Shown here: piece after piece, positions 8,401 to 41,297 of the stretch
Layout: every line of letters starts with the position of its first letter
How positions within the stretch are numbered: position 1 is the first letter of the stretch
DNA from: Oculina patagonica
Taxonomy: Eukaryota
Reading direction: 5' to 3'
Assembly (NCBI RefSeq): GCF_052425735.1
Contig: NC_135763.1
Location: 1,550,001 to 1,614,000, forward strand
DNA length: 64,000 nt
Position numbers and translations under genes: made by a program
The notes under the pieces: generated by a model
The model's input: the letters and a program-made list of their open reading frames with translations, nothing else
What the model was told of the DNA's origin: nothing
Database searches by the model: none

Positions 8401-11266
8401 ATTCCATCAAGCTTGAAGCAAAAAAATCAATGAACGCGCAGGGTGATTTATCTTTTCGCTTCACGCTCCACGGACTCTACGACAAAAATGGACTGCTAAT
8501 TTTTTAGATGTCACTGGAAACCATAGCATCGGTATAACCTGTTAAAATACATCTTTTTGCAAAGTTAGATTATTTGCAGAGGGGTTTCAGAGCCACCTTA
8601 AATTTTCGAAAAGTTTCGTTCTATTAAGGCGCAGCGAAGTTATTTTGCACTGAGTAGAAAGCCCTTGGCTTACTCTACAAGATGACATATTTTTTGTTGG
8701 CTGTGACGTCATTAGCGCCGCCATCTAGGGTCCGCCATCTTGGATTTCACCTTTTTTGAAAAGTCAGAAAATAACGGAAATTGATGCAAAAAATCAAGTC
8801 AGAATGCTTACGGAGTGTAAAATTAAACAAATTGTACAATTTTGTTTCACAAAACAGGAAAACGAAAAAATGTTTTAAATGACGATTTTTGGCCAGACCT
8901 GCTTGTAATTATTACGTTACCATGGCAACATCAAATATCATAGATACATGGTTGACATATCAAAATTTCCGCAAGGGATGAATGAACTGCTACTGAAAGN
9001 NNNNNNNNNNNNNNNNNNNNNNNNNNNNNNNNNNNNNNNNNNNNNNNNNNNNNNNNNNNNNNNNNNNNNNNNNNNNNNNNNNNNNNNNNNNNNNNNNNNN
9101 NNNNNNNNNNNNNNNNNNNNNNNNNNNNNNNNNNNNNNNNNNNNNNNNNNNNNNNNNNNNNNNNNAGTATTTGTAGCACAAAGACTAGTGGGGCCGAGCA
9201 AATGACAGAAACAACTAAATCAAATAAACATAACTTTAAGAATCCCAGATGGCCAGAGGCAAACCAGCTGGCTATTTACAAGCGTGGACGAGAGTCTAAA
9301 CTTGGGACTACCAAGAACAGATCCAGCTAGCGGCTTGGGTGGGACTTGAACCCGGGAACTCCACGTTGAAAGTCCAACGCTCTAACCGCTTGGCCACGCT
9401 GCCTCCATCCATATTATGCCACGGGCGCGCGTTGGATATGAAATAGTAGATAGCCAAAAAGGCGCGTAGCGAAGAGCTGGCTAAAATCACATCATCTGAC
9501 TCATATCCAACAAGTACGAGTGGAATCATTGTTGTTTTTTGAACAACAACAACAAATATCGGTAAATCAATCAAAATTCTTCTGGAAATACATCATCTAA
9601 CGGTCCAGTTTATACAAATCAAATCGCACAAAGAATTGCCTAATGTCGATTAGAATAATTCGCCAGGTATAGAAAATGTACAAAAAAGCAATGTGGTGTT
9701 AAGTTACGAATTGATTTTTTTTTTAGCTGTCTGAATTAAGTGTAATGGTGGGGACAAGGCAAGGGATGGCCTGGAGTGGGAGGGGGAGGAGGTGAAGCAA
9801 GTAGAAAAATCTCGCTCGTGCGTCTTTTGCTTCAAAATCAGGCAAACGTATGAGTAGTTCTTGAACGTCCTGCCTTTTTTTCTAGTTGGCCAAAACATTG
9901 CCGAGCAAGAAGAAGAGAAAGCAGATGAGACAAATCCCTTTTCTGAGCCCTGGGAGGAGAGTGACTTAGTTCTTGTGGTGGAGGAGAAGAAATTTCATGT
10001 CCATCGCCAGATACTAAGTATACACTCGCCAGTTTTCAAAGCCATGCTAAATACGCATTTTAAAGAGGCAACTGCCAGCGAGATTCCGTTACCAGGAAAG
10101 AAGTCAAACGAGATTTTGGACTTCCTAAAGCAACTGTACCTAAAAGAAACAAAAGCAATTACATGTAAGTACCTACGCTTTTAAGAACCTCTTTAAGTTA
10201 TTATCTGGGTCATATGAAAGAGAAGTCTGTCTGAGCTTTGAGACCGACGATACAGAACACATGGCTGGCTGCTCGGCTAATGAAAATTTCAGTGATATTT
10301 TTGAGCTTTTTGTTTTCAAAAATCTTTTATTAAAATGAGTGGATGGTAGAACGGAGCTTGTGTGAATTTTGTTGAAAGGACTGTGAATTTTTACCCTCTT
10401 GCTCGGATCTTTATTTTTCTTTACTATAATTTCAAATCAGTGAATATTCTTATAACTACCAACGTATGTATTCACATGATTATGATCACACTCACTATCG
10501 CCATTACGACCACGACGGTCACTACAAACCATCACCACCACCAATCGCCATCAACAACACCATCATCATCATCATTATCATCATAACCACACCACCATCA
10601 AAATCATCATCGTTACCGTCAAGCATCACGGTCATGTGTATTTTATTATGAATTTTTTTTGTCTTTACTCTTTATTTTTCAGTGAACATGGTGGAATATC
10701 TTTTAACGTCAGCCGACGAATACCAGGCAAAGGCAATCTTTGACCTCTGCGTGAAGTGCCTTGAGGAACAAGCAAAATCTCAGGAAAATGCGATGAAGAT
10801 TCTTTTCCTGACAAATAGCACAGTGATGGCAAGAGAGGACGGCAGGTTGGACAGTGTTCGTAGGAAATGTTTCGAATTGATTAAAGACATGAAACTTACA
10901 GTTATCTTGCAAAATAATGATTTCAAGAATTTTGACCGAGATACCACGGAAAACGTTTTTGTGCAAAAAGTTAAACGATTAGAAACGTTTCTCAAAAGTG
11001 TTTATCCTCAGTTTATGGGGGTAGAGGAGTTGGCTTTATGGGCGCGTATGGGGGAAGCAAATTCAACGATAACTCCCTGCCCTCAACACTTTTATGAAAA
11101 AAGAGTGAATGGGGGGAACCTTTCTGAGCTGATCAAAATCTGCTCAGTTTGTAGGAGAATGATTGAGCAGTTACTGCGCGGCTACTCACGTCGCAGCAGC
11201 AATTCCGTTGACAGTCGTCTGATATCGATTATTCAAGATTTTCATAATATAGAGTCAAACCTTTGA
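5489..11266 (+). CDS. BTB-domain protein paralog 2 (about 301 aa, 3 exons)
   Basis: Exons 5489-5531, 9886-10164 and 10683-11266; GT-AG introns, both phase 1; 906 nt in frame. BTB motif FSEPWEESDLVLVVEEKKFHVHRQILSIHSPVFKAML..F.E. Exon 1 is supported by homology to the first exon of paralog 4. Confidence 0.85.
5945..6094 (+). mobile_element. Right-end fragment of the Harbinger-like MITE family at 13911-15473
   Basis: ...ggttagccggggcaccctccctccatgtaaacaagccc matches the right TIR of that family. Confidence 0.75.
6714..7259. mobile_element. Long-TIR MITE inserted into a 5S rRNA-derived sequence, 5-bp TSD TTGGT
   Basis: Imperfect TIRs of about 165 bp (ccatgagttataggataagtgg... / ...ccacttatcctatagctcatgg). 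TTGGT at 6709-6713 and 7260-7264. The flanks rejoin as ccagttggtcacccatccaagtactaa, which resembles the 5S internal promoter region on the minus strand. Confidence 0.75.
9000..9165. other. Assembly gap (N run)
   Basis: Run of Ns inside intron 1 of BTB paralog 2. Confidence 0.99.
9236..9405 (-). mobile_element. tRNA-derived SINE
   Basis: Minus strand reads ggcagcgtggccaagcggttagagcg (A box) ... cccgggttcaagtccc (B box), followed by a SINE-like body. Confidence 0.65.
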
Positions 11267-13607: not shown

Positions 13608-16600
13608 ATGTTGCTGTATTTTCTTTATCCACATCTTCTTTCATTTATCATCTTTTCTCAAGGCAAGTACCCAATTGATTCGCTCTGTCCCCGTGGGTTG
13701 TACATAAAAAACATCGCTGATGTACTCACAAGCTCGCTTTCAACGCTTATAAAACGGTGCGAAGACATTATTTGTCCGTTTTAGCTTTGAATTCATATCA
13801 CAGATATGTTGTGACATTGTAGCTGTCACTCAAAAGCCGTAATATCACTGATTTTACCCCAAAATATGTTAGACATTTTTTTTATTTTGACTCTATTTTG
13901 CATGATATTAGGGCCTGTTTACATGGAAGGCGGGTGCCCCGGCTAACCGAGTTACCCGGCTAACCGAGCTACCCTGGGCGAGCCAACTTTTCATACGTTT
14001 CTTAAGAAAACGTACTGAAGCCTTTACATGCTAGAAGGGTAACCCGCCTTGCCGGGGCACTCGGTCTACTTGCCCGGGGCACCCTTCTAGGCGGGACAGC
14101 TTTTTGCCATGTAAACGGTTATGACCGAGCTATCCCGGCTTGCCGGGATAAGTTTTCGCACGTGTTTTTGAACTAAATTTGAAGTAAATGGCATAAAATG
14201 TAAAAATTCTGGACCCAAACAGTGCTATTTGATCAAAATTAGTTTTATGACTTTTATCGGTTGTCTGGAAAATATTTCTTTGAGCAACAGCTAATTAAGG
14301 TCGCGCAGGACCCTTGCTCATTAATAAATTCATTAGTCAAATTTCTTGTTGGAGTGCTATCTTGTAAAGCTTTAATTCGCTACATTTTGAATATCGATTC
14401 CTCTAAAATTTAATAAGGATACTCAGGGATGATGGAATTACATCATGATTGTCCTTTTACTGAGAGATGACCGTTGTCTGTGATGTTACAAGCCCTTTAA
14501 AGTTTAACTGAAGATGATGCAATTTTGTGTCCAAGTTTTCAGCTAGCACAGCGCACCAAATTAAATAATTATATAGCTTAGTGATAAATCGTAACTTCTT
14601 TTGTGTTCCCACTAGAACGAAATTTTCGATTTCAAAAACTGCTACAAGTTAATGGCTTCTAAGAGCGTAAAAATGTGAAATCTAAACTTTGAAACATGCT
14701 ATCTTCATTTTGAGAAGGAAATTTAAAAATTCGCTCTAGCCAGAACACAATAGAGTACACCAAGTTTATGTTCCTCGCGAATCCACTCTTGAAATTCTAT
14801 ATCGGCGGAGAAAACTTGGACACAAAATTGAAGGTTTTGAGGCTTCCGAAGACCTTCCGAGTCAATGTTTACAACAACGTGTGATATATTCAAAGCTGTG
14901 AATCTATTTATGATAATTTCCTATGTTCCAGCGCACGTGGCACAAAGCTGAAAACAATAACTAGTAATTACTTGTACAAAAGAGTTTAAAAACAAACATT
15001 CTCATGAATATTTCGTTTGTTGTCGGCTTCAGTCGTCCGGCAGTTCGTGCATACTCTTTAAATAAATACATACTAATGATTGCAAGGGTCCTGCGCGACC
15101 TTAATTCGAAATTTTCGTGGGAATGATTATCCTAATTCACGACACAACAAATTTAATTTCAATTTGACAGCCAAATACTGTTGAATTTCGATTGAATTTC
15201 GCCAAAAATGAACGCAGTAAATTTCTGAGAACTTGCACATCAAATTAAAATAGGTTTGAAGAGGAAAAGCCTTGATTATTCAGTAAAAAGTCATATTTTT
15301 CTTCAATCATTTGGAGCTACAATGTCTTCCCACACCGTGTCACGCTTCAATGACGCTGTCTCATCTCGGGTAGAAGGGCTGTGAATTCTGCATGTAAAGG
15401 CGGGCTAGGTTTCATCCCTTCTAGCCGGGTAACTCGGTTAGCCGGGGCACCCTCCCTCCATGTAAACAGGCCCTTAATGCAAAGTTGCCTTTTATACATG
15501 GAAGGCTGGTGCCCCGGCTAACCGAGCTACCCTGGGCGAGCCAACTTTTCATACGTTTCTTAAGAAAACGTATTGAAGCCTTTACATGCTAGAAGGGTAA
15601 CCCGCCTTGCCGGGGCACTCGGTCTACTTGCCCGGGGCACCCTTCTAGGCGGGATAGCTTTTTGCCATGTAAACGGTTATGCCCGAGCTATCCCGGCTTG
15701 CCGTGATAAGTTTTCGCGCGTGTTTTTAAACTAAATTTGAAGTTAATGGCATAAAATGTAAAAATTCTGGACCCAAACAGTGCTATTTGATCAAAATTAG
15801 TTTTATCGGTCGGCTGGAAATATTTCTTTGAGCAACAGCTAAGTAAATTTCTGAGAACTTGCACATCAAATTAAAATAGGTTTGAAGACGAAAAGCCTTG
15901 ATTTTTTAGTAAAAAGTCATATTTTTCTTCAATCATTTGGAGCTACATTGTTTTCCCACGCCGTGACACGCTTCAATGACGCTGTCTCATCTCGGGTAGA
16001 AGGGTTGTGAATTCTACATGTAAAGGCGGGCTAGGTTTCATTCCTTCTAGCCGGGTAACTCGGTTAGCCGGGGCACCCTCCCTCCATGTAAACAGGCGCT
16101 AAGTACAAAAACTAAAATGTGCATGTTACATGTGAAGCTTGCGTTTACAAAAAGCAAGTCCTTTCTTTGACACATTTCTTTAACATTTTTGTAAAAGACC
16201 AAATTCTTCAGCTTTTACAGACGTTAAACTTTTAGCGAGTTGTCAAATTTTTCATTCTTGTTTAGCCGCGGAGCGCACAGAGGATGCATTCAACATAATC
16301 AACAATGACCTGGATCAGCTAGACTACGATGCCTCAATGAATACAGTTTTCTTTGGTGAGCATGGAACCTGGGGTTCCAAATATATTCCTGACAAGTAAT
16401 TTCAATAAAATTGTACTTTCTATTTTTCATAATTCTCTTTTAAGTAAATTGAACACAGTTAACAATAAATTATATTTTTTATTCGTCTTGCTTTTTGTCG
16501 GCGAAGTTGGTCGTAATAGTCCTGCACATGCGCTTATTGGTAATGTCCAGCGGGATTGCCCAAGTCGCACAGCGGCCCGATTTCGACGTCAGACACCAGT

Positions 16601-18314
16601 CACAAGTAAGCAGACAAGAGTCCAGGGTGTCACGGCCAGACAAGACTGCGATGGAATTCTTTTAGAATGGGATCGACTTCACCTACCGTACAGGTATGGA
16701 ACTTTATTTCCGATGCGTTCTTCGGATGCCAAATTTCTTCCTTGTCTTTTTTCACGTCGCATGTTTAAGTTCTTTAGACGGTTGGTTCTCGTCCTTGCTC
16801 CGAGGGCTTTTCTCCGGGTTCTCCGGTTTTCTTCCCTCCACAAAAGTCAACACCTCTAAATTCCAATTCGATCGGGAATCCCACGGCCACAGGTTTGTTA
16901 GTCGCAAGACTATTACGTGCTACCCTCGTAAAATAAAGACAATTTATTTTATTTTTATTGTATTGAAATCAGTTCGGAGTACTCAGAAATTACTTTTAAA
17001 GTAGCTTGTGTGAAGGTTCACCGGGTTAACGATCGTCATAACCTTGCCGTCACTTGTTTTGTTTTACATTTCAGTCCAAGCGGACGTCCAGTGTACGCAG
17101 AGTTCAAGCACTTTAATATTTATCGAAGCACCTTGTATTTTCACGATGTCTCTGGTATGACCCCTCTCATGTCGGGTAATCAGGAGCCGTCCCTACAGAG
17201 CCCAGCAACTCACAGTTACAAGGACATGTATCCACCTGCTAATGTGGACCTTTACTATGCTGTGACAATAGTCAACGGAAATGGGCAGGAGGAGACGAAA
17301 GTGGACATAAGAAAGGTATGTTCTGAAACTAACACCAGTTGTTGTTTTAAATTTGCTTATTGTAATGTCGTAAACTTCTTTATTCTGTAGCTTATCATCT
17401 ATATTCTTACAACGCCCTTTAGCCTGGATGTTATATATGTGCACTGATTTTGCAATCAAGCCCGTAGGTGTCAATCACTAGTATCAATCACTACACTTAT
17501 CTTTCCGTAGATTTTTAAAGGTTAAAAAAGTATCTTCAATGGTTAAGCTCAGAACTATGCCTTTTTTTCGTTTTTTTTCTTCTGAAAATTAAAACGATAC
17601 CATTCAACAAGATTCATTTAGGAGACCTTTTCTTCATTCTAACGCCACCACGAAGAGAAAGTCAACTTAGAGCTAAGAACCAAACAGATTTAAGAATGAA
17701 CCATTATAAGATTCTACGAACAGTTTAGATTACTTCAGTTTTCTCAGAGACAAGTACATACTAGTTCCTTCTCCATGCCTGTCAAGACCCATCTTCGTGA
17801 TAACCACTCAAATATTTTATTGACGATGTAGATCTGAATTTAAATACGACGTTACAAGTGGATTTAATTCAGGATCTCCCTACAACAGGTCATGTTTATT
17901 GGAACAACAAAAAAATCGAGCCCTCTGTTTAGCGTCGTTCCAGCGGGTTTCGCCTCTAACGCAAGAGTACTTCATCACAGCACGGCGTGGAATCCGCGAC
18001 GGAACGAATACCTGGTCGCGTTTGATTTTGATGTTGATGATGACGGTGTCCCGGATCAGGTAGCGGCTTTGAGAATGGACAACCAAGGAAAACTAGTGAA
18101 CAGAGCGATAGTAAATCTCACTATTCCTACTACGAACAACGCGGGTAAGCTAACTCCTAAAATTACACAAAACGGTTAACAGAGAAAAGGCAATAGCACT
18201 GTATCATTTTATTTTAACTTTTCATGATTCTAGAACAACCTCATATTACATTACAATACATCATCATCATCATCGCCGTCGTCATCATCATCATCATCAT
18301 TATCATCATCATCA

Positions 18315-18357
<43 letters not shown>

Positions 18358-21300
18358 GGTTGTGGGAATTTCAGTAAAAGGAGGAAGAGGCAGATGTACG
18401 GGAGGAGAACCCAGTCGTAAAATCTGTACTTTTTCCTTATTCCTCCTAGGTAACCAAGGTTGGCCGAGTGTTGCATACAACCAACCTGCCGATGAATTCA
18501 TGATCATTTTTCAGTTTCGTAGCGGTGAAATGAAATACTTCTCAAACAAATACGTAATCATTAGCCAGAGGGTGATGAGCTCACAGACAGCAAGGGCAGC
18601 CAGCCCTTCCGTGCTGATAAAGGCCTACGGAAAACTAGGTCCCGGTCAGTGGATCGACGTGACCAGCCCAGTACTAATATTCAATCCTGCCACAGGTAAG
18701 GACGTATCCTTCACATCCATGCACAACCAATACCTGGGGCGTCACGCAACGCTTGTCCTCGCTGGCGTGGTGGGCGAGGCGTTGCGTGACGACTCAAACA
18801 ACCATCATCAGTTCTTTCTTTCTTTCTTTCTTTCTTTCTTTTCCTTTCCTTCGTTCTCTCGTTGTTTCTTTCTTTCTTTCTTCCTTTCTTTGTTCTTCGT
18901 TCTCTCAATCAGAAAATCAAAGTCAAACAAACCTGCTAGGGTGGTTTATTAAATAAAGTTCAATGCTGTTGCACAGGAAGCTTAAACTAGTGTCATGATT
19001 TGGTTTCTTTTCACAAAAATGGAACGTCTCTCTTTTTTGTAGGGGGTTATGTGGCGTCAGTTGTGTTTGCAGAAGACGTGGAAGTGCGTAAAGAAGTAGT
19101 AGGAGTATTTTTCGACTTCAAAGGCAAAGTGCAGTACACTGATGCAGTATGTCACTTTATTAAAGGTGACGGCTACGAACCTAATCTCTTTTACGACTCG
19201 ATGAGAAAAGAAATTTACTTCACGTGTACCGTGGAAAGTCGAGGTGTGAGGACCCTGCACCTTGACTTGAGATCAGGTTTGCATTTATTGGTTATCGACA
19301 AGAGAAACGCCAGCGGCGCGCATGCGTCAAACCTGGACCCTTCTCAGTTGAACTTCATTGGCTACACAAATAAGACGTTTGCGAGGACTCGTGGCTACTA
19401 CAACGAACTTCTCGATCGGTAAGAATTTGCGAGACTGTTTTGTTTTGTTCAGAAAGTGGTAAATGCTGTGCCAAAAATGCAAATGCGTTTTTATTTTAAA
19501 TTGTTTGATGACCTCATTTAATTTAAACTATTTTTTTGGGAATTTTCATCTATGTTTTGATAGAGTTAATTTCTTTTGTAAACTAACGTGAATTTGCAAG
19601 GACCACCGTGACAAAATAGAAGTACCGGATCCTCTCACTGTAGAGGATCTAATCAGCTATAACTAAATAACGAATAAAGAAAAAATTGCAAGGCCGATTG
19701 AACGGTTTGGGACTGTATTGAAATTCCAATATTTCGGAAGGCACGGCCTTCCTTCTTCAGGGTCTTACAAAGAATGACTCTTAAGGTTAAACGTTACAGA
19801 TATAAAATGTGGGAAATACGATACAACGCGTAAATAACAATGGTAGAAAAACAAAAACGTTAAAATTTGAAATTTGAAAGGATAAAGAGACGTTACAACA
19901 TGAAATTAAAAAAGATATAAATATATAATAAGATGCTATAAATGGCACTAAAGACTTGAACACCGTAAGCTAATACTATAATAACAATATGAGTGTAAAT
20001 ATAAACTACGAAATGTCATGCTTCATCCTTTTTATTTAATCCTAAAGGTTCAAGTGTTTGACCTCTTTCAATGAGGTACGCCTCTCTTGCCTTCCGAACA
20101 ACGTCACGGTTAGATCGAATGAGTTCAAGAGGAATGAGTTGCATGTCAGTAGCGTTATGATTGTTACAAAGAAAATGTTCTGATACTGTAGTGGGTTTAG
20201 AGTGGTTAGTTTTTTTGTCAACAGTTCTGCGGTGTTCGTTGAAACGGTCTTTAAGTCTACGTTTGGTTTCCCCTATGTATTGTTTGTGACAACGGTTGCA
20301 CTGTACCATGTAAATAACGTTCTTAGAGTTGCAGTCAATGTGTTGATTAATAAGTCTTAATAATTATAATTAATTATTAATTAATTAATTAATTAATTAA
20401 TTATTAATTAATAATTTTAATAATTTCTTTTGTCCATTTTTGTGATGGCCCGTAATGCTGATCAAAGGCTCTTCGAGTAACCTCATGGTAATTCGATGAA
20501 TGAAGTGTCGACCTTCGCATTTTTGGCTCGTGCTCTCAGGCGTCGTAGCGCTATTCAGTTTTCACCACCAAAATATTTACGTTTGATCCGGCATTTAAAC
20601 AATTGGTGAATTTGTTTTGTGAAAATGTTTCCTTTTTTTTCTTTTTAGCACGGATAGCGTTATTTTTGAGCAGCGGATAAACTTTGAGAGAATAATACGC
20701 CTGAGCACTTCGTGTTTCTCCTCGAATCAAAAAGATGAAAAACGGATGACGTGTCACGAGGTGACGTGACGCGAAACAAAAACGTGCTGTGGATGTGGTG
20801 TTTAAAAACCAAAAAACAACACATGGCGAACGTAATAATTTTTAATTTGTTAAAGCTTAATTTGTTCGTCTGCAACGCAGGCTAACTTAAAATAGGCCCT
20901 TGAATGTTTGCTCGCGTGAATGGGTCATTGATAGGTTTTTTCTTCAAATAAGCGTTCGATAAAGTAACACAATTTCACTTTCCAATAGACTAGCTGTGGA
21001 CAGTCTAACTTTCCAAGGGTTATTGATGGTTCGTGCTCTCAGGCTTCGTAGCGCGATTCTATTTCATTACAAGAATATTTAAGTGTAACCTTTGATCCTT
21101 TTATCATTAGGTAATTTGTTTTGAATATTTTTACTTTTCTGTCAGCAGGTTTAGCGTTATTTTGAGCAGCGAATAAAATTTGAGAGACAGATGCGTGTTT
21201 CTGCTCGACTCAAAAAAATGAAAAACGGATGACGTGACACAATGATGTGACACGAAACAAAAACGTGCATGAATGTGTCCATGAAAGTTGAGTTTACTAA

Positions 21301-24300
21301 AACGCGTCACGTGTCAAGCGTACCTTATTATAGGAATATAACGAAGCATTTTAACAACGCGAACAAAATATACGCGTAATAAAATTAACACGAATTTAAG
21401 AAAAGTTCTGGTTAAATCCTTATAGTAAAAAAGTTAACATCAATAAAATTAACGCGAATTTTTGAAATAATTTCGCGTTAATAACATGTATCGTTAATTT
21501 CCTATAATAAGGTAACTGCACCTAGCTTATAGCTGCTAACAGTAATGTCACAATCTCACTTTATTTGCCTTTGCATGTTTTTTTATGTGAATGGGTCATT
21601 GACAGCGTATGCTTTGAGGCATTGTAGAGTGAATTCTGTTCTCTTTTATCACCAGAAGTTAAGTGTAACTGATCCTCTTTCGATTTGTTTTGTTCCCTGA
21701 AAGAGAGAGACCCTGGGAACGAGGCTGGAGAATAATTTGTTTTTGATTGACATGTGCTGAATGGCGTTTTAAACAACCTTTCTGTCAGCACGTTTACTGT
21801 TAAATGCATGAATTAATTGCGGTTTAATATCAGAATGGAGTGACGGAAATACGTCACTTCGAGAACGAGAATGATTACTATACCTCATTACCATTCGGTA
21901 AAAATAATACACCGAATGCAAATATGGCGGACCACTCGGTCGGTGCCTGGCACGAGTCGCATGAGAGCGAGGCTAGTTAGGCCTCGATGTTTTGTTTTGA
22001 CAAGCTTCCCCAGAAAAGCCTTGCTTCGTGGTCGATCTCGGCCTTCCTACGATTTTTGAGTTATTTTTTCAAAATAGCTCTTTAGTCGGCGCGATGGACC
22101 TGTAATCAGTGAAGTATGTGGGTTTGTCACACCAATCAGATTTCAGGTACTATCGGAACCAATCAAATTGTAGTTTATAAAGGGGAAGCAAACTGACGTA
22201 GTCAGCAATTTCGTTCGAAGTTTTTAGATTAGAAGGAGGCGGAATCGGTGAGTTGTGATTTAACCCTGGATTAAAAACGTTTTTCGTAACGCCCGCCTGC
22301 TTACAACGCACACGCCGTGAGCAAAAGGCCCAACAATAACTTGTTATTCGTCTTATTCGAGCGTACGTTTGGAGAGGCTAGCTTTCCTGACCGTAGTAAA
22401 AATAACATATAACATTTGCACAAAGCAGCTTTGAAGAATAATGTTGTCATTACTTTTGCCGTCCGCTTTGCGAAGTTCGTTGGGAAATTGGAAAGTTTGT
22501 TATGAAGTTGCCAAATAGGTTGCGAGTTTGTGAATCAAATTGTGAGCTTCGATACAAAGTTCCCAACTTCGGCCCGAAATTAATAAAACCTTCTATAATT
22601 ATGTTATCAAAAAGGGCTTTGCTACGCTAAACTGTTGGAAACAAATGTCATAAAAATAAAAAACTTTTATGTTCAGCGAGCCGTAAACATGTTGTCTCGA
22701 ACAAATTAGTCTGTCGCATCGCGTCGGCTTCGATTAAAATCAATAAACCATCCAGTTTCATCCGGTTTACAAACGCAGAAGACTTGAAATTGAAGACAGT
22801 GAAGATTATGCCTCACAGAAATCGTTAAATATGTGTTTTCATACAAAAAAGTTAAAATTTGACCAAATTTCTACCTGCATAAAATTTATTTATCGCCAAA
22901 TCACTTGCGTGATCGCTGATGCGAAACGTTGTCTTGCACTTCAAGCTACTTCAACTTTCCTTGACAAGCTCTAACATCTTCGAGTTCAGAAATCGCCATG
23001 ACTTTCGAGCAACATGTCTTGTTTCTCCTCAACTACCAAAACTTCGAAAGTTCAGTCGGGCCGAAGTTGGGAACTTATCGAAGTTCGCAATTTGATTCGC
23101 AAACTCGCAACGTAATTGGCAACTTCATAACAAAGTTTCCAATTTCCCAACAAACTTCGCAAAGCGGGCGGCCAAAGTAAACAGAAATCAACTGTAAAAC
23201 ATCTCGTTCAAATATTTAATGAACCGGTACAAGTATTAACTTTGCTGTTGAAAGCAACTACAATCGATAGCAAAAACAGAATAAGAGCGTGCCATTCCGT
23301 GACAGTTTGATATTTCAATTAGTTCTTGTTTGTTGAATAGAATTTAGGTTGTAAATGAAAGAAAATCTTTGTTGAACAGTTCTGACAGGAAACAAAGACT
23401 CCAGGTATACTGCGCTTTAAAGAACTTTCCCGAAGAAAGTGGTTTTTGATTTGATGCGTTTATTACTTCGTTTATTATAGTACTTTTCGTTCAATGTCTG
23501 TATGGAAACGTGGCTTTTTCGAGAAAAACAAGGGTATCGTGTTACGTTCGTTTTTAAAAAACAAAGGTCTCATGTTACAAAAGTGAGAAAAACAACAATA
23601 TCATGTTTCAGTGTTTGGCAAAAATCCAAAAGTATTCCGTAACAAACAAAAGTAACACGTTACGGTTGCTACAAAGCTAGCAACAAAATAACCGCTTAAA
23701 CAGAATAAGAACGTGCCATTTTGTGACATTTTGATAATTGAATTAGTTTTTGTTTTTCAATTAAATGACAAAAATTTACGTATTGAATAAAACAGTTCTG
23801 ATGTATCAAAATGCACGTAAAAGTTATTTTGTTTGCAAGCAAATTTTGTGCAAAAAAGTGACTCCGTGAGCCGCCATACACAAATGGCTCAACCCATGGC
23901 ATAAACCATCCCAACAGGACAATCACCCAGTTTCACCCCAAGCCACCCCATAAATTGAAAAAATAACTCCTGCACGCTTAGCGTGCCTATGTTTTAGGTT
24001 CGTTAATGCTACATAAAGGGAAAAGAATCTTCCACAGCACTGAAAGAAAGTCTTTTGTGAGTTTCCCCTTTCACCTCTAAGGGGAAATCAGGCGATCGCG
24101 AAGGAAAGGAGTTCACGACTGTCACGATCGCCGAAGGAACTTTATAAAGTTCATTACATTTCAGGTTAGAAGATCTTAGAAAATGTGTAAGCGATCACAT
24201 TTAGCTCCAAGTCATTCTTATTTGGCTCAATACTTTCACTAGCTTTAACTACGGGGCAGTTGAATTTCATTCACTTGGTTAGTATTTGTTTCGTACGATT

Positions 24301-27300
24301 CCGTGCGAGTATATCGGACGCGAACAAAGCCGGACATAAACAACCTCTTTTGAACAAAGTTTGTATTGGAAGTAGAGCTTTTCTTTACTTTGGGGAAGGT
24401 ACTGGCCATGCAACTCGTGCTTGAACACCACCAGACACCACATAAGCTTGGCCTTTAAACGATTTTTCTAAGATCTTCTAACCTGAAATGTAGCGAACAA
24501 AACCTCAATAGTTCCCGCGGCGATCGTGAACTTCTTTCTTTCGTCTCAATGAATTGCATTGATCCACTTTTTCCCTTAGAGGAAACGGTGAACACTTCTA
24601 TCACTTATCGTGGCATTCAGAACCACAGCAACTCGTAGGTGCAGCGAAAAGAAACACACAGATTGACGAATACGCAAGACTTTTGTAGGAAAACATTGTC
24701 AAAACAAAACACCGAAGCCTCACTAGCCTCGCTTTCATGCAGCTCGATCCAGGTGACGACCGAGTCGTCCGCCATATTTGCATTCGGTGTATTCACTGCG
24801 AATTTTAATTGCGCTCGCGAATTAATCCTCATAGAGAAAAACTTAAATTCTTGCGGAAACTTCAGGCCTTTCGCTCCATTTATATATAGAGTGTATTGCA
24901 TGAATCCTTGGAACCCAGACAGACGAATAGCTACCCAAGCACGCAACACTTAAACAAAGCGAAACACTAGCTTATGCAGACAAGAAGTCTCTCTTACACA
25001 CTCAAAAACCAAAAGCGTCGATTTTTTTTTCACTTAGACTGATCTTGTTCTGGGAAGATACGGAGAACGGCAGACACACTGTAACCACCGCCTCTATTCT
25101 GATTACTCGACAACATTACACAAAATCTCTGAAGCCGTATAGCTGTCTTGCTGAAAAACAAATCAAGATGCCAGTGCCGGTGTATTTTCCTCCAACAAAT
25201 GGCCACTTACTTCTGTGGCAAGAGCAAGGACGATCCGCATGGGTGATAGGAGGAGAACTGCTTCAAGGTTAGGCTAGGGACACTTCGTATTGTTTATGAG
25301 ATTTTGTAATTGAGATAGTAGCACATCGTGCTAGGTAGGGTCTATATCTCATCTTACCGCACCCACATTCGCAACTAGCCAATCAGAAGCGTCGTGCACT
25401 GTCCGAATTCCTGCATTATCAAGTCACTGGTTAATACCTTATCGTGCCTTTTGGTAAGCTTTAGCGACATAACAGGCTCGTGTGGTCTCGACATGGGTAT
25501 GTCGGCTCAATCAAACCCACCTGATGTGCCGACGAAGCGAACCATAAAGGTACGAGTGGGTACAAGTACAGAGTAAATCTCTAGTTTTACCCATCTCCTA
25601 TGGAACGCGCAGTGGTCTCATGGCTAGCGCGTTGGATTCCAGGAACCACAGCAAAATGCTGCCTCCCTCCCTCGCCGCCCCTCTGGAACCCGTGTGTTGT
25701 GGTTTTGACCAAGGTACCTTTATATATTCTCGCATAACCTTTCTCAACCCAGTAGTATAAAAGGGTACTGGCAAATTGTTAGGGCATCCTGCATTGATGC
25801 TAGTCCTGCGTTAGACTAGCATCCCATATTGGTGGATTCGTCTGACGTCATCAAAATTCTAAGATCTAATCTGTTAATCCTACAAAGGTATTCTTTTGAC
25901 ATATTCTAGACATAAACCCCTATGCAAATTTTGGCGAAGATTCTGTGTTTCTTTTAGGGGATAAGGCATGTCTTAGATGAACGTGTTTCTCCACTGTCAC
26001 AAAAACGGATATTTCTATCGAATGTTTTAGTTTTCAGACGTGATAGTAATTTAGAAGTGATATCAGACTTCAACCTAGGAAACAGAGTTTAGTCCGGTCC
26101 AGGTCGGCGCACACCAAGGACGAGTCCCTGCGACTTGTCCTCTGGTGTAACTCTTCAAGGGACTTGTTGCAATGACTAGTCACAGGGACTTTACCCCTCG
26201 TCTGTGCCAACCCTAACCTTGCCCCCACTAGTAGCTCTAATTGGCGATAAAACTGAGTATTTGAGTCACTGACTGAAACACTCTTTCCCGAGGTTGTTGT
26301 TAATTGAAATCTTGAAAGGGGGTGATACCCCATTAGGCAAGGCAAGACATTGTTATAAGAAGAATCCTCAAGCATTCAATTCACATTCCGTAATGATTTT
26401 ATACATTTACAGTTGCTAGTCGGTTTTTGATGTTATGTTTTTTCTAAACTTGCCCAATCCACTAAGATTTCCCCACTGATATTTTATTTAACCTTTAAAA
26501 TATGTTCGTCTTTGTACCACCAACGGTTCATTTCAATTCTTAAAATTTCTTGACATTAGGAAATTTGCAGGTTTCTTTTGGCAGAGACCAAACGAAACTT
26601 GCTGCTGTCTACAACAGCCAGCTTCAAAGTGCGTTTGTCACATGGCAAGAAGGTGGCTTGGTTTTCGGGCGTCGCATTGCCATGGCAACGCCACCAGTGT
26701 GTTTTCCGCGCTGTTCGTCTGGAAAAACGTGTGCAATTCTTGACATTTGCGTCTCAGCAACAAGAGGTGATTGGTCAATTTTTCCGTTTTAATTATGTCA
26801 TGACTTTAAATGGGAGGCACGGTGGCCTAATGGTTAGCCGAGTGCGCTGGACTCTGGATCGAGCGATCCGGGCTCGAGCCCTGGCAGGTCACTGTTTTGT
26901 GTTCTTGGGCAAGATACTGTACTCTCATAATTCATCTCCTCATCCAGGTATATAAGTGGTAACCCTGCAATGGACTTGCATTCCATCCTGGGGTGCATAG
27001 AAATACTCCCAGTCGCTCAATGCTACGTCAACCAGGATAAGCTCCCGCCTGATGGGCAACTTGCACCGAACGCAAACTCTACCATGACTTTGCTTGACTT
27101 TGTGTTTTCTGGTTGAATGTCTAATCAGTCGATAGAAAAGGGAACACACGATACAACAAATTATTGTTGTCTGTTTTCTAGATGGTTGTACCATTGCTAA
27201 CGGCGGTTGCAGTCATATGTGCACCTCGCTAAGCCACTGGAAGGTGCAATGTTCATGTCCCAAAACAATGCAGCTAATGGAAGACACGAAAACTTGTCAA

Positions 27301-30300
27301 AAAGGTGAGTATCAGTATCATGTAACGTATGATAAAAATTAGCACATGTTGCTTCAAATTCTCACGTTTTATTGGATAACACCCAGCACTTTCTAAATGT
27401 AATACTGTGCTGACTAGGTTCATGATAACTACCTAATTTTATTTCCCTATGGCCTGATGATATCTAGGCTGTTTTAATATAACAGCTCAGATAACACAAC
27501 TGAAACCATCTCATCACTCACTGCCATCATATCAATGCTCCGTGGTGGCAGCCATTTGGAAGGGTGGGAAAACAAATCAGAAATTACAATGTCTGATATA
27601 GAGTTCCAATGTCTTTCGCAAATCCTCCTAGTCCCACCGTGTCATGGGATGACTCCCATCAAGAGACCATCATCAGGGAAAGACTATGTCTGTTTTAGAG
27701 GAGCTTCAAACAACGGCTGCCCTGCCGACACCTACTGCCATATTGGACCAGCTCGTGAATTTTCCAAATGCTGCCCAGGTAATCACTTATATATAATTTA
27801 ATGTTACCAGAACACTTCCCTGAAATAGTTCAACCTCGTGTCGCCAAACTAGACAATCTATATACGTGGCCAAACATTAAACCATCCTCCTTACTCGCAA
27901 TAACTTTTTGATTATATTTTTGTCCTCATTATAAACAAGCTCCTCTTCCAAGTTATACAGTGATGGTAGCCACGCCTTCATCAGTATGGAAGCTGCTCAT
28001 GAACACACAAACAAGTCCAGCTTCCTTTCGACAACTGCAGATAAACAATCCTGTGATATTTACTGCTTTAGCCTATGACCCAGTAAATAAACGTATCTAC
28101 TGGGGAGATAACTATGCAAATACCATAAACAGGATGACTTTAAATGGCGATGGAGGAGTAGAAATTGTCGTTGGGTGAGTCAAGACTCCATTTTGCATGT
28201 CACATTCAGTATCCGGCCAGCAGCCTTGTACCAAAACATTGTAGGTCTTAAAAAAGCTATGCCACGATATTTGAATTAATAATGTGATGTACAAAGTTGC
28301 ATAGAAGGAATCCTACAATTCCGTGCGTCCTTTGTTATATTTTGACTGAAGACTAGCCTGTTCCAGGCGTTCGATTAGCTGGGCAGCAGCGTTAGAACGG
28401 CGATTGAAAAAAAGACGAGAGTAAGTCGGAGAGACGTTCTTCGCGCTGTAAACCCTGACTAACCCAACGCCTGGAACAGGCTAATTTAGATCCAAAAATA
28501 ACATTTTGTAAGTTGGTGGTTATTTTTTTTTTCCGCCATAGAAGCCCTGAATCTTAACCTCACTAAGATCTTCCTGTGTTGGGTACGTGATGCAAATTAC
28601 TGCCTCGTTTGCCAGACTGTGATCTGAATTTGCTGTTTGAAAGATGTGGGTCATCTGATCCGATCCTTAACGCTTAACCCCACACATAAATGTGGATCAA
28701 AAGGCCCACGTAACATTATTTGTTTCCTAATATAGCAGAGATATCGGCGTCGTAGGAGGTTTAGCAATCGATGCTCAAAGCAACATGCTTTATTGGACGG
28801 ACACATCATTTCGCACCATTGAGCGAACAAACCTGGACGGAAGATACCGCCGAACACTACTTAGTGGCTTGGATAAACCAAAGCATATCGTCCTTTTTAA
28901 ACCGGCAAGGTATGTTTTAGAGAGTAAATGAAGGTATTACAATATTGAATATTGATTGAGGAGATAGCAGAAACATATAGTTTTTGGCTTTTGGCGTGCG
29001 TTTGCGAATGACTAAGAACATAGGAAGTTAGAAACACGTTCACAGCATTATAAGCAGTGCCACATGAAACTACTGCTCAATAGCTTTTTCATTTGAATGG
29101 TCACACACTAGGATTTCATCACCACAGACTTAAACAATAGAACCGCTATAAACAGCATAAACATAAACAACACGATGAACAGCACCACATAAAAGAACTG
29201 CTGCTGAATAGCTTTTATTTGAATGTTGATTGAATGGCCACACACTAGTTTCGTCTTCAGACTTCATCAGTAAATGTCAGAACTACCTTGGACAGCTAAA
29301 TAAACGGCGCCACATGAAATCAGTGCTCAATAGTTTTATTTGAATAGTCACATCGTCACATACATGGTTCTAACCAGAGAGACTTCAGAGTTCCAAAACC
29401 ACTTTTTTACAGCGTATAATAAACAGTACTCATATATAAGTGTCATCACAGTGTTCCATCCACAAACTTAAAATTATACTCAAACTATAATCATGTCTTG
29501 AACTGTGTACATTTTCGTTTAAAGCACTATGCATTACTATTTTCAGATTTTGCTTTAATACTTTTGCTTTATTACAACAAAAAATTATTTTAGGGTAATG
29601 TTCTGGGCCGATGTCGGTGCGGTTGCTAAAATAAAACGAGCCAGTTTAGATGGAAGGAACGAGCGAGCCATTATCTACAAAGCTGTACAGCAGCCGAGCG
29701 GATTAGCTGTTGACGATGCCACATGGAAACTTTACTGGGCTGACGAGGACCTTAATAAGATAGAGAGCTCCGACTTTCTGGTAACATTCCCCACTCCCCT
29801 TCAACCCTGTCTACAAACTACAGAAAAGCCGGCCAGATCGAAATGGGGATAACTTGTAAATTTATTTGGCAACAAATTAATAATCCAGATTTTGATATTC
29901 TTTAAAGATTCTTGACGCAGTAAAACCAGTAAATTTTGTCCTTAAAGTGTTCAAGCATTTTGTACCAAACAGATTAAAAGACGGTACTTAATGGTGTTGA
30001 TGATGCTTCTAAATGACTATAAAATCCAGAAAATTCAAACAAATAAATCACAAATTTTCATTTATTTATTTCAATGAACAGGCAGCAGCTAAATTTCTCT
30101 CCTCATGAAGAAACGGTTGCACAATCGGAGTACAGTCGCAGCTAGATAACACATTCGCACATAAGAATGTTTTAAATATTTTCAGGGTCGGAGGCGTCAA
30201 AAGTTGTACGTTAAACAACCGCATACGCTGGCACTTCTAAACAACAGGTAGGATTCAACACATTATCTGGAATTTGAATATGAATAATACAAGTAAGTGA

Positions 30301-33300
30301 GGGTCCTACGACGGAGAAGTAATCATTAATTCGTGATTTCAAAACTTTATTTTTGGGGATTTGATGTTCTATATGATTAGGCTCAATTTTCGCCGCTCTC
30401 GATCTCTCGAGTCCGATCTTCGTTTTTCCCCGGAACTGATCACGCGCCAGCAGTACGTTCGGGGAAGGAGTGCGGGCTTATTTTCTCGAACAGCGGTCAG
30501 CGGCTGGAAATCGGGCCTATTCCTTTATGTGATTCAACATAACTCAAGAGAAATCAGTTAATGTCTAAGACATCGGTTGAATTTGCCTGCGAATGCGCCT
30601 GCGCCGCAGTGCAGCGCTCTGGGGCGCTTTGGGCGATCGCCCAAGACAGAGAGAGAGAGAGCTCTCTCATTTTTTATCCAGCCCCACTCGTCGCCCAACT
30701 AGGTACGTAGAGTAAAAATAACGCGGAAAACTACGAGCACAAACACTCCAAGTATCCGTGCAGGAAACTGATAAAACAGCTTATTTGAAGTCTTTTTAGT
30801 TGGGTAGAAGATAGGCATTGTAAGAGTCTTGCACAACTGTGTGCATCATATTGATTCCTAGGACGAGTTAATTTTCAATTTTGACTTGTTTTTGGTTTAG
30901 ACTGTTCTGGAGTGACAAGCAAACGGACACTATCCACTCAGTTAATAAACTCACTGGCAAAGACAGGCTGACTGTTATCGAAGGCTTGACAAGTGTGATA
31001 GAGATCATTGTGTTCAAATCACCACGTCCAGGTTAGGGATTGATCTCGAACTGAAGATTGTTCTCCAAGCCTGTCTCATTGTCGGGTGTAACTAATGGCG
31101 TCGTTGCTTTTTTATCGCCGTTTTGTAGGCTGAATTTCAGCCGTCGTTTTGTAGGCTGAATTTCAGCCGTCTTCTCTGATTCGGTCGCTTACTCACGGGA
31201 GTAGGCGCGAACCAGATAAGACGGCTAAAATTCAGGCTGGTTTAAATAGTAGTGATTATCCTCCTTATTTGGTTTTTAGAAGATATAAGAAAATTAAGCA
31301 AAACCCATTCCAAATTTATGATGGTTATTAGGTGGTACTAGGTCCAAACTAAACTACGAGTACTCTATCAGTTTTTTCAGGGTCCGTCGAGTGGCAAAAC
31401 ACTGGAGCGCACGGAAATATCTCTTCGCACTTGGAGTCCACGGGCCATTTTTTTTTTCGTGCGTTGCATCTCCTCCTGCGAAGTAATTCTTTTACACGTG
31501 GTCGCGTGCTTGCTCACTCAACTGGCCCTGAGACGACGACTATACTCGTACTCTAGGTCTAAGCCACCCTGCGAGCAGAGCCGCTCATTCAGATTTTAAG
31601 AAAGGCTCTGCTAGTAGTGCGAGTCCAACTTGACGACGTCATGAAGGTAAAGGCAATGTTCAAGAAAAAGTATCATTTTAAATAAGTCAGTTAACGTTCT
31701 GTTACTAACAACTGCACCAAATTCCCGAGACGAAATTCACTGGTTTATTTTGCTCATAGTTGTACATTGCCGGGATCCAGGAGGGCCTGATTATGGGCGG
31801 CGAGATCCAAATCCCCGTCCAGATGATGGTGACAAATATCCCCAGGGTTCTGTGATAAACTACGAATGTTTAAATCAGTTTCGTCTGCACGGCCCTGTTA
31901 CTCGCAAGTGTCTGCAGAATGGAAGCTGGAGTGGAAATGCTCCCGAATGCTTTCGTAAGTAATTTTTAAAGGATCTGTAGATCCGATATCTGCAAATTTT
32001 CTCTTGATCGTAATGTGTATAGCCTGCGAGAGCAGACGCATTTCCGGCCGTCGCTTCTCTCCGCCGAAAAATAGCGTCTGCGAAACCGAGCCAGGAAACG
32101 ATTTCTGTGACGTCGCATCTTTTGTTTTCTCTTTGGCCAATTAGATTACGCGATAGAATAAAACACGAGTGCACACCACGCGGCTCCCTCGCGACAAAGC
32201 TGTTACGAGCTGTCTGCGAGATGCTATGGCAATTTTTCTGAAACATCGAAGGTTTCTTACCCCGGTGAAAGTAGTTCTTTGCAGAATAACATTTTCAGTT
32301 GCAAAGGAGGTTAATGTATGTCCTTTTTGTCAGTAGATAGGTAATAAATTCTAGCAACACACCGGACGCGACAATCGACCAGGTGAGTTTCATCTTCACC
32401 TTTCGAGAAATTACACAAAAAATTTCCGACAAGCGTCATTGCAAGGCCTGCGAGTTCTAAACCCTGAAGCGTTCTTAGCGTCCTTCTTTGCACCACGAAG
32501 ACTCAAAAGTTTGTCCCAAAGAATAAAAACCAAGAAAACTTTCGCAGATTTCAGCGATAGCTAAAGTTATGTTTACATCTTGACTCGCTGCGTAAAGGCG
32601 AATCTCAGAGAGTCGCTCGAAAGATTCGTCTCTTTCGGAAGAGACAGTACACTGAAATTACAACTCTGACCAATAATAGTATTGCTTTTATTTGGTATCT
32701 TCATCTTAGTTTCAGTTCAGGGCAGTTTTGTCTAGGAGTAAAGTTACTTGTTACAGCAAGTAAATTTTATGATTTTACCGCAATTGACCCCAAAACACCG
32801 GAACTTGGCTCGATTTCTGTCGCTCTCTTGGAAACTGCCGGCTACACGGTTCCGGTTGATCATACATTTTCCTAAAATTTCTAATCGATTTTATGACTTG
32901 TTTTGAAATCCCTGGTGACAGTATATACAATAAAATAAACTTACCAACAAAACAAGTAACATGTACATGTGGTTCGTCAACAACGACTGCTGCTACCGAA
33001 TATTTATCTCACCTATCTGAGACTCTGGTGATCCATACACGATCAAATAGCGGCTATTTTCAATATTTCTTTTCTCGGCTTCCAATGTACTGTGTGTTAT
33101 TCAGCACTATTGCATTTAGGTCAAGCGATGATAATAGGCTGACCTGGTCCTTCATTGTCTTCATTCAACTTACAAGCGGCGGAAAGACGATCACAATAGT
33201 GTACAAAATATTCCTCTCAGGCAATGCTTAGAAAATTGCTGATGTCCCAAATCCATTCTAAAGATTCGTGAGTACGTCTCCCACTTCCAATTAAAGCATT

Positions 33301-34506
33301 AAACTGAAACACTTTGCAAGACGTTCCTCATCGCGTAGTGTCCACTTCGTTTGCCATTGTTTTTTCCACGCGATTGTGTGACGGCTCACAGGCTACACGC
33401 GTGGCACCTCTTCGGATATGCAAGGTAAATTTTCATTGGTTACCTCGAACTGACGTCACAGAAATCGTTTCCTGGCTCGGTTTCGCAGACGCTATTTTTC
33501 GGCGGAGAGAAGCGACGGCCGGAAATGCGTCTGCTCTCGCAGGCTATAATGTGTAAGACTACCTTTGTGGTATTGATTAGCAGAGAGGAGATTCTTTTCC
33601 TGTTTAATACCTTCCGACCCCTTTCTTAAATTTTTTCGTCTCTTCGTGTTATTATTTCTTATGTAAAATATTACGCAATGCGAAATTTTTCCCACTTTCA
33701 CCCGGTTCCCGCCACCTTGGAAATGCAGCTTCCCGCTTTCTCTCCCGCCTCACGTAAAATTATGCGCCTTGTTTACTTCTGCAACTTTGTGGAATCAACA
33801 GGAGAACTTTAAATGATATACAGTTCAAACGAACGGTGTTAGAAAATATATGTCTGTGGCCTCACAAAAAAATCATTAACTACTTCATGTGAAAATACGA
33901 AATGTAACGCGAGCGTGGGACAAAGAAAAATTCTGAGTCCCTAACGGGAATCGAACCCATGGCCTCCCAGATACCGGTTGGGCGCTCTAACCAACTGAGC
34001 TAGGAGAGACCGTGGTGAGCTGGGCCATTTACTAGGTTCAGTTGATGGCATCCAAGGTATGATCCAAAGCATTTTAACAGGTCAGATAATCACTTCTTGA
34101 TTAATTAATCATGATAATTATTTTAGCTCCACCACGTTTTCGTGAGACGCCAGTGAACATGACGGTCCAGGACGGTCAAAGCGTGCTATTAAGATGTTCT
34201 GCTGTGTCTTCAACCATCACGTGGTCAAAGGACGGTGAGGTCATTCGTGGGGGAAACTTTGCTTACTTGACATCTGGTCTGCTGATTCTAAAAGCTTATC
34301 GAGATGACATTGGCTGGTACGTTTGTAATGCTACCAATCGAGGAGGAAGCAAAGTAGCTCGCGCTTATCTGCGCGTATTGAGACCTCGCGAAGCAGGTAA
34401 ATTTAAAACAATTACTTTTCACCACTGTCTAGCTCTTACCGCCGACCGGTTAGCTCAGTGGTAGAGCGCCGGACTGTCGTGCGGGAGGTCTCGGGTTCGA
34501 CTCCCA

Positions 34507-40939: not shown

Positions 40940-41297
40940 TTTTATTGAAAACGCCCAAAGAATTGCGATATTTGAGCTCCCGAGCTGTTTTCGTTGACGC
41001 GTAACGGCTACCATATTTGTGGCCAATTGTATATGAGCTCATATACCATTGCCTGTTAACCAATCCGCCCAAAAGCTCAGGAATTGCAATATACCATTGC
41101 TAGTTTTTGATAAAAGAGTGTAGACCATGAATAATAATTGTGGTCGATTTGTTAAGTGCATATGTGCATGTATGCCCTTCATGGTAACAGTTGGTTCTAC
41201 TCTTCTATCCTGCGAATGTTTCGTAGCTTTCCATACTTTTGTGTTAAAATGCCCTAACTGTTTTTTTTTTTTTCGTGTAGAGGCCAACGTTCCAAAA

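Follow-up and report, generated by a model that had tools for sequence, protein, structure and literature searches.

Gene structure and splicing

We analysed a stretch of 64,000 nucleotides from the genome of the stony coral Oculina patagonica (assembly GCF_052425735.1, contig NC_135763.1, positions 1,550,001 to 1,614,000 of the forward strand), hereafter called the window and numbered from its first nucleotide. Between 16.2 and 37.2 kb the window harbours a single, expressed multi-exon gene on the plus strand. In order, this gene encodes a signal peptide, a furin-type pro-region, a fibronectin type III (FN3) fold, a seven-bladed beta-propeller, an EGF module, a Lustrin-Cys domain, a YWTD propeller, a Sushi domain, an immunoglobulin (Ig) domain and a trypsin domain. 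The seven-bladed propeller is the main subject of this study. The following parts of the gene were located:

16237..16355, plus strand: tentative upstream coding exon (end of the signal peptide and pro-region); 5′ limit uncertain, weak tblastn match to the N-terminus of the Orbicella protein P0180
16507..16693, plus strand: exon with pro-region, furin-type site RFRRQ (16578-16592) and first FN3-fold strands (VQGVTARQDCDGILLEWD); spliced contigs
17075..17315, plus strand: exon with the remaining FN3-fold domain (FNIYRS ... YYAVTIVNGNGQE); spliced contigs
17889..18144, plus strand: exon with a linker including the closing strand, blade 1 (AWNPRRNEYLVAF) and an acidic D-x-D-x-D/N-x-D loop (18024-18056); spliced contigs
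18450..18695, plus strand: exon with blade 2 (PSVAYNQPADEFMIIF ... VIISQRV) and the first strand of blade 3; profile A1 (see below) and spliced contigs
19043..19418, plus strand: exon with the divergent blades 3 and 4 and the first strand of blade 5 (YYNELLD); spliced contigs
25038..25267, plus strand: exon with blade 5 (LILFWED) and blade 6 (PVYFPPTNGHLLLWQE ... WVIGGELLQ); phase-matched with 19418
26560..26766, plus strand: exon with blade 7 (AVYNSQLQSAFVTWQE, LVFGRRI) and a Cys-rich linker; from the sequence
27182..27304, plus strand: EGF-like exon (FXa_inhibition; Pfam E 6.2e-10)
27640..27798, plus strand: Lustrin cysteine-rich domain (Lustrin_cystein; Pfam E 5.5e-06)
27945..31033, plus strand: exons of an animal-type YWTD / LDL-receptor class B propeller (Pfam Ldl_recept_b, three exons)
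31741..31959, plus strand: Sushi/CCP domain (Pfam E 3.7e-11)
34105..34461, plus strand: Ig I-set domain (Pfam E 2.9e-12)
35720..37179, plus strand: trypsin-like S1 protease domain in two exons (Pfam Trypsin E 1e-13 and 2.6e-45)

From 16507 to 27304 the exons are joined in an open frame, and all their junctions are of the GT-AG type with consistent phases. RNA-type contigs from public runs (three organisms) join 16506-16690, 17072-17313, 17887-18143, 18449-18693 and 19041-19417 in single records, and therefore these introns are removed in transcripts. The window stretch is also present in coral-metagenome DNA runs. A preliminary description of this stretch, made from the letters alone, had placed the unit between 16507 and 26766. 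These limits are true exon ends, an acceptor and a donor, respectively, with transcript contigs beginning or joining at 16506. Likewise, the peptides that it quoted are all present at the given places in open stretches of the plus strand, and the spliceosomal introns that it assumed within the propeller are spliced out in transcripts.

At the 5′ side, one transcript contig (X6) reaches 188 nt upstream of 16506, and the bin 16244-16430 is at exon-level depth. It is likely that an upstream exon ends at 16355, where a clear donor follows (TTTG/GTGAGC), and that the exon with the start codon lies outside the located part of the gene. An ATG at 16528 was rejected as start codon since it is in another frame. 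In the orthologues from anemones, the octocoral and Orbicella, the RRRR/KRR site and the beginning of FN3 align with exon 16507..16693. The junction between blades 6 and 7 we infer to be 25267/26560. The donor at 25267 was chosen over that at 25242 because WVIGG/WSIGGQLLK is kept in the paralogue and the anemones; the candidate junction 25242/26571 was replaced for the same WVIGG...LLQ/K conservation, and the acceptor at 26571 pairs with the donor at 25242 alone.

The 5.6 kb intron between 19418 and 25038 holds transposon remains. Within it lies an open reading frame (ORF) of 97 aa on the minus strand (20019-20309) that encodes a GIY-YIG nuclease domain (Pfam E 5e-06) and is probably a mobile-element remnant. 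High-copy repeats were found 5′ of the gene (14200-16240) and at 16620-16990, the latter including part of the intron 16694-17074. In both regions the summed contig depth is in the thousands versus about 25 in the DNA run X1, with many loose ends and joints. Near-identical ORF pieces are located at 13823-14173, 15354-15731 and 15855-16102. Intronic microsatellites, one of the ATC/CAT type and one of the TTTC type, occupy 18250-18367 and 18805-18898.

Downstream animal modules and protease domain

The downstream part of the gene is of animal type, and the proposed fusion of the propeller to animal modules is borne out by the Pfam matches to EGF, Lustrin, Ldl_recept_b, Sushi, Ig and Trypsin listed above. 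The exons of the YWTD propeller (27945..31033) are colinear with residues 731-995 of the Nematostella protein P0166. The protease translations carry the activation site K/IVGG together with TAAHC, DIAL and GDSGGP, and the residue six positions ahead of the catalytic Ser, the specificity position, is an Asp, as in proteases of the Arg/Lys type. Judged from its sequence, the predicted product is a secreted mosaic serine-protease zymogen with a furin-type site and an intact S1 domain of the Arg/Lys type.

The FN3-fold unit

The unit ahead of the propeller contains FNIYRS at 17112-17129 and YYAVTIVNGNGQE at 17253-17291 in an open stretch of the plus strand. Neither the exon nor the N-terminal regions of the orthologues gave a match to Pfam fn3 (PF00041) at E up to 1-10, and a profile of the unit matched none of the PDB sequences. 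An AlphaFold2 (AF2) model of the orthologous domain (pLDDT 85.6) was a seven-strand FN3 beta-sandwich. The assignment is by predicted fold alone: the preliminary description of an FN3-like unit is supported by this model but not by a Pfam match.

When the model was searched with Foldseek, FN3 domains of neogenin, of bacterial glycosidases and of Clostridium FN3-like proteins were retrieved (TM 0.55-0.63). In the PDB, it resembles FN3 domains from bacterial enzymes about as closely as those from animal neogenin. Its neighbours in the ESM Atlas and the AFDB are mostly bacterial or phage proteins, both libraries being dominated by microbes. These matches favour neither a bacterial nor an animal origin of the FN3 domain, and the prokaryotic origin that had been put forward for it as well is not upheld.

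The seven-bladed propeller

We found seven repeats, where about six blades had been counted before. Their common core is [WYF]N...E[YF]hhh[FW], with h for a hydrophobic residue, and in the additional one it reads PVYFPPTNGHLLLWQE at 25177-25224. The cores of blades 1 and 2 are AWNPRRNEYLVAF at 17985-18023 and PSVAYNQPADEFMIIF at 18464-18511. They are followed by PVLIFNPAT/GGYV, which spans the 18695/19043 junction, PNLFYDSMRKEIYF at 19180-19221, YYNELLD/R/LILFWED across the 19418/25038 junction, and finally AVYNSQLQSAFVTWQE at 26604-26651. The core is kept in blades 1, 2, 5, 6 and 7, while blades 3 and 4 are degenerate. Blade 2 is the most canonical and contains all three elements P-x-VAYN ... 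(N/D)E(Y/F)LVVW ... I(F/Y)GQR in this order. An acidic loop, DFDVDDDGVPD (18024-18056), is found in blade 1 alone in the coral protein. Its residues are invariant in four orthologues (D-x-D-x-N/D-x-D-x-x-x-D), and this pattern fits a candidate calcium site.

To obtain a fold, residues 205-640 of the Nematostella protein were modelled with AF2, which resulted in seven four-stranded blades (pLDDT 80.6, pTM 0.84). An alignment of exon fragments with full-length orthologues (A3) was dropped for folding as fragments were put on the wrong blades. No Pfam match was obtained for the N-terminal exons or for the N-terminal regions of the orthologues, NCBIfam gave nothing for the propeller repeat or these regions, and blade and module profiles matched no sequence in the PDB. 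In Pfam, Ldl_recept_b is absent from the exons between 17889 and 26766, such repeats being confined to the downstream propeller. The module also differs from the Sialidase/BNR family: it has no BNR match in Pfam, seven blades and not six, and a Foldseek TM to Neu2 of 0.45-0.51.

Prokaryotic relatives of the propeller

A profile of the blade 2 exon, built from three paralogues (profile A1), was searched exhaustively with HMMER against 1.84 billion protein cluster representatives. In total, 575 proteins matched at E<=1e-3, from which 99 had E<=1e-10, and the best long match had an E of 1e-27. Our census covers the best 150 of these 575. Of these, 131 are long proteins in which the blade is repeated many times, 17 are short exon-like fragments of cnidarian type, one is a Nematostella protein and one is a spurious match. 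A match to a Trypanosoma cruzi protein (P0010) was discarded as low-complexity noise; it consisted of 30 short stretches without a match to the bacterial blade hidden Markov model (HMM). Against the bacterial proteins, the coral exon profile gave E values from 1e-27 to 1e-9. One of these proteins, P0007 of the metagenome-assembled genome GCA_028289455.1, is encoded in a compact gene context of bacterial type. The other long proteins that were checked carry dockerin, RTX, GEVED, Big_3_5, choice-of-anchor D or GlyGly-CTERM-like parts. For several bacterial members a precomputed listing gave PF22847 (Glyco_hydro_43_rel); this was not reproduced in our Pfam scan and was not used.

The bacterial proteins contain 7 or 14 repeats and fall into two deep subfamilies with blades of ~70 aa and ~53 aa. 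Their blades share the motif P-x-VAYN ... EYLVVW ... IFGQR ... FRIS, and an acidic loop lies between strands 2 and 3. When one genome for each species of prokaryote (GTDB) was scanned for the pattern, 388 stretches were confirmed. The best 78 of these represent over 15 phyla of bacteria, plus one haloarchaeal metagenome-assembled genome. Groups with the module include Chloroflexota, Planctomycetota, Myxococcota, Acidobacteriota, Bacteroidota, Gammaproteobacteria, Actinomycetota and Bdellovibrionota. The preliminary description had called the propeller signature typical of prokaryotic surface or secreted proteins, where the repeat family is indeed abundant. As it had also suggested, we combined structure prediction with Foldseek: the model is a confident seven-bladed propeller, and among predicted structures it comes closest to proteins of prokaryotes or phages that are uncharacterised. 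TM scores were 0.67-0.73 for AFDB clusters (E 1e-15 to 1e-11) and 0.72-0.77 for neighbours in the ESM Atlas, and the bacterial proteins among the matches carry dockerin, RTX or Por_Secre_tail parts.

As examples of the bacterial modules we compared P0007, P0029, P0067 and loci L016-L093 (Anaerolineae, Planctomycetota, Myxococcota, Eisenbacteria, Colwellia and others) with the coral module. The two agree in the order of the blade motifs, the number of seven blades, the partial blade that closes the module, the presence of an acidic loop and the predicted fold, and both are parts of extracellular proteins. Exon 18450..18695 is colinear with the bacterial blades, and the seven anthozoan blades are in register with 23 bacterial single modules, starting at the closing partial blade and ending at the last IFGQR strand (alignment A5). 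In contrast, the coral blades are shorter, blades 3 and 4 have lost the motif and the acidic loop is left in blade 1 alone. The partners differ as well. The bacterial propellers are combined with an N-terminal domain of their own of ~200 aa and with dockerin, RTX, Big or anchor parts, whereas the coral propeller is combined with FN3 and animal modules and its gene has introns.

A convergent or chance resemblance, arising from the common blade pattern and with no specific kinship to bacteria, would be conceivable since beta-propeller blades recur widely and the closest solved structures are generic seven-bladed folds (Z 24-31). Yet profile matches with E values down to 1e-27 among 1.84 billion proteins would be hard to obtain in this way. 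The reciprocal search points in the same direction: an HMM of bacterial blades only scored the module of the window at 42.5 bits, versus a maximum of 9.5 bits for 2000 shuffles. Moreover, the order of motifs inside the blade is common to both sides, and the register includes the closing partial blades. We regard convergence as very improbable, and the propeller is almost certainly homologous to an uncurated bacterial family of seven-bladed modules.

Solved seven-bladed folds near the model are the CylK C-terminal domain (7ron), PLL lectins (5c9o, 6gxs, 6gxr), Escherichia coli YncE (3vgz) and PL42/PL24 lyases (7esk, 6byp), with Z scores of 31 for CylK, 29.3 for a PLL lectin and 29 for YncE. Across these propellers, VIA Z was 26-31 with a root-mean-square deviation of 2.6-3.6 over 300-354 residues, and Foldseek TM was ~0.5. 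Their identity to the model is only 8-11%, no profile match to the PDB was obtained, and WD40 propellers score nearly as high (Z 24-26). We claim neither a family relation nor a common active site with any of them.

The bacterial N-terminal domain of ~200 aa is shared by P0007, P0009, P0011, P0025, P0031, P0034, P0036 and P0056, and is found in P0058, P0061, P0066 and P0070 as well (residues 1 to ~240). It carries the motifs NPRH, W-W-L, IEQ-F, V-V-DA-G and YPVTIDPEIG, has no match in Pfam or NCBIfam, and looks like a second uncurated bacterial domain. Because the bacterial propeller proteins have this different conserved domain at their N-terminus, no two-domain cassette of FN3 and propeller was transferred.

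Anthozoan orthologues and paralogues

All named animal relatives are from anthozoans, namely Actiniaria (Nematostella, Actinia, Actinostola), Scleractinia (Orbicella) and Octocorallia (Dendronephthya), and are annotated merely as 'uncharacterized protein':

Nematostella vectensis: LOC5501890, XP_048580335.1, P0166 (1424 aa)
Actinia tenebrosa: LOC116298966, P0169
Actinostola sp.: QZH41_008533
Orbicella faveolata: LOC110039834, P0180
Dendronephthya gigantea: LOC114525788

The orthologues have the same domain order from the signal peptide through trypsin, and the coral gene is colinear with the Nematostella (P0166) and Actinia (P0169) proteins over 16.6-37.2 kb. Across FN3 and propeller, identity to the orthologues is 31-60%. 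P0166, P0169 and P0180 start with a signal peptide and a short pro-region that ends in RRRR/KRR/VRRQ just ahead of the FN3 unit.

Two paralogues of the whole N-terminal region are present in the Oculina genome on another contig (C11; loci L004, L006 and L010), with identical exon structure and intron positions. They are divergently oriented and ~22 kb apart (22.533-22.543 Mb, minus strand; 22.565-22.575 Mb, plus strand) and are 42-65% identical to the gene in the window. One of them is the orthologue of Orbicella LOC110039834: the Orbicella protein is 74% identical to this C11 paralogue and 60% to the window copy, which is the more divergent of the three Oculina paralogues.

These data also bear on the question of whether the propeller exons are foreign to the animal gene, as would be expected for bacterial contamination or a chimeric assembly. 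The coding blocks are cut by GT-AG introns that contain animal repeats, spliced transcripts link FN3 with propeller exons, and the frame runs on through EGF to the trypsin domain. In addition, the two C11 paralogues share the intron positions and orthologues exist in the five named anthozoans. Nothing was found that speaks for contamination, and it is excluded.

In phylogenetic trees, the seven anthozoan modules formed one clade (SH-aLRT 100) with an octocoral/hexacoral split that mirrors the species tree. A single anthozoan clade with this split fits one origin followed by vertical descent.

Other features of the window

Two tandem paralogous genes are located on the plus strand at 41124-42962 and 46834-48878. 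Both have a BTB/POZ exon at the N-terminal side (Pfam E 4e-14 and 9e-15), and in each a long exon without a Pfam match comes next. An exon of a spermine/spermidine synthase gene was found at 60384-60578 on the plus strand (Pfam E 4e-08), and this gene continues downstream. A run of 166 N at 9000-9165 marks an assembly gap or a masked stretch.

Origin of the propeller

No non-cnidarian animal or other eukaryote was found among the best 150 of the 575 HMMER matches or in three word-indexed searches of protein libraries. The module is widely and deeply distributed in bacteria, its animal side is a single clade and no other eukaryotic match was obtained. Therefore, one ancient transfer is the most economical reading: the propeller probably entered an anthozoan ancestor once from a prokaryote, before corals, anemones and soft corals diverged. 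We hold this with reserve. A prokaryotic module would have entered the genome of this ancestor a single time and would then have gained introns. Strong divergence would have followed, in which blades 3 and 4 lost the motif, and the module would have been joined onto a pre-existing animal protease scaffold.

Several observations weigh against a transfer. In our trees, which have no root, the anthozoan clade does not fall within either bacterial subfamily. Its stem is 2.2-2.7 substitutions per site long and joins at the node between the two subfamilies. Lacking both a root and nesting of this clade, the trees give neither direction nor timing of a transfer. Identity to the bacterial modules is only 14-19%, and the HMM matches arise mainly from blades 1-2. 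For the FN3 domain no bacterial source can be traced: its fold matches in the PDB are mixed, and the bacterial propeller proteins have a different domain at the N-terminus. The absence elsewhere is based on protein libraries (the best 150 matches, and word-indexed searches with length limits), and Medusozoa, sponges, ctenophores, placozoans and choanoflagellates were covered through these libraries and not through genomes. Moreover, the short cnidarian-type fragments P0039, P0052, P0059 and P0076 have no assigned organism. The earlier proposal of a horizontal acquisition is thus supported as far as the animal relatives are confined to Anthozoa, but the position of the clade, the long stem and the low identity leave the transfer itself not established.

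The same observations could be explained by vertical descent from an ancient eukaryotic or animal propeller that was kept by Anthozoa and was lost, or diverged past recognition, elsewhere. The lack of nesting, the very long branch and the low identity are all compatible with such a history, and eukaryotes were sampled indirectly. On the other hand, it would need many independent losses. In addition, bacterial proteins reach an E of 1e-27 while non-cnidarian eukaryotes were absent from the searches described above, and in the ESM Atlas and AFDB clusters the predicted structures closest to the model are those of prokaryotes or phages. We therefore consider vertical descent unlikely, although it is the most serious of the competing explanations.

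Another direction or route has to be considered too: bacteria could have obtained the module from an animal, or a virus or eukaryotic microbe could have carried it into the anthozoan ancestor. Modules of similar structure were found in phage and virus clusters and in a Hint-domain protein of the AFDB clusters, and an unrooted tree has no direction. However, the bacterial family comprises at least two deep subfamilies in more than 15 phyla, and since the animal side is a single clade a transfer from animals to bacteria is unlikely. For the viral route, the sequence search recovered no viral relative. We consider these routes together improbable, and prefer a single ancient transfer from a prokaryote.

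Possible function and implications

The FN3 unit and the propeller could form an N-terminal binding head that chooses the ligand or the site of action for the protease, and binding may depend on calcium through the acidic loop of blade 1. By analogy with other mosaic proteases, it is conceivable, though we advance this tentatively, that the two domains act as a recognition domain or calcium-dependent exosite which binds a ligand or recruits substrates and thereby directs the C-terminal Arg/Lys-specific protease. A more specific and considerably more speculative scenario is that the captured propeller is a calcium-dependent sensor of microbial or matrix glycans that, once bound, triggers or localises the protease, which would make the protein a cnidarian-specific pattern-recognition protease. 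Equally speculatively, such a sensor would be functionally parallel to factor C or MASP with an independent origin. Bacterial PLL-type lectins rank high among the structural matches; this would be compatible with binding of carbohydrates but is not evidence for it.

MASPs, complement factors and horseshoe-crab factor C are presumably the nearest known systems, as in these, too, a C-terminal S1 zymogen domain follows EGF, Sushi and other binding modules, and the proteins are secreted as well. To our knowledge, none of them has such a propeller, and their domain order is different. Unlike the mosaic sensor proteases compared here, the coral protein has no CUB or LCCL modules.

Our literature search retrieved no paper that names these genes or gives their accession numbers. 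A list of 41 anthozoan genes with horizontal gene transfer (HGT) has been published (PMC4878875). The words propeller, trypsin and serine protease do not occur in its entries, and the single 'peptidase' that it lists is of the S49 type and unrelated. That cnidarians acquire bacterial genes is known; what is new here is that a propeller of bacterial type, from a family with no curated entry, sits within a mosaic protease of metazoan build.

If the reading of a single transfer is correct, an animal would have captured a prokaryotic module at the level of a domain, before the split of hexacorals and octocorals. This module would subsequently have been intronised, duplicated and wired into a metazoan mosaic protease. 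As the rest of the protein looks animal, screens for HGT of whole genes would probably miss such a capture. On the bacterial side, the finding would reveal a repeat family in more than 15 phyla and hundreds of genomes that has no entry in Pfam, in NCBIfam or among solved structures. On the side of the corals and anemones, the gene would be a candidate for a lineage-specific extracellular recognition protease, and its Nematostella orthologue LOC5501890 would be tractable for testing.

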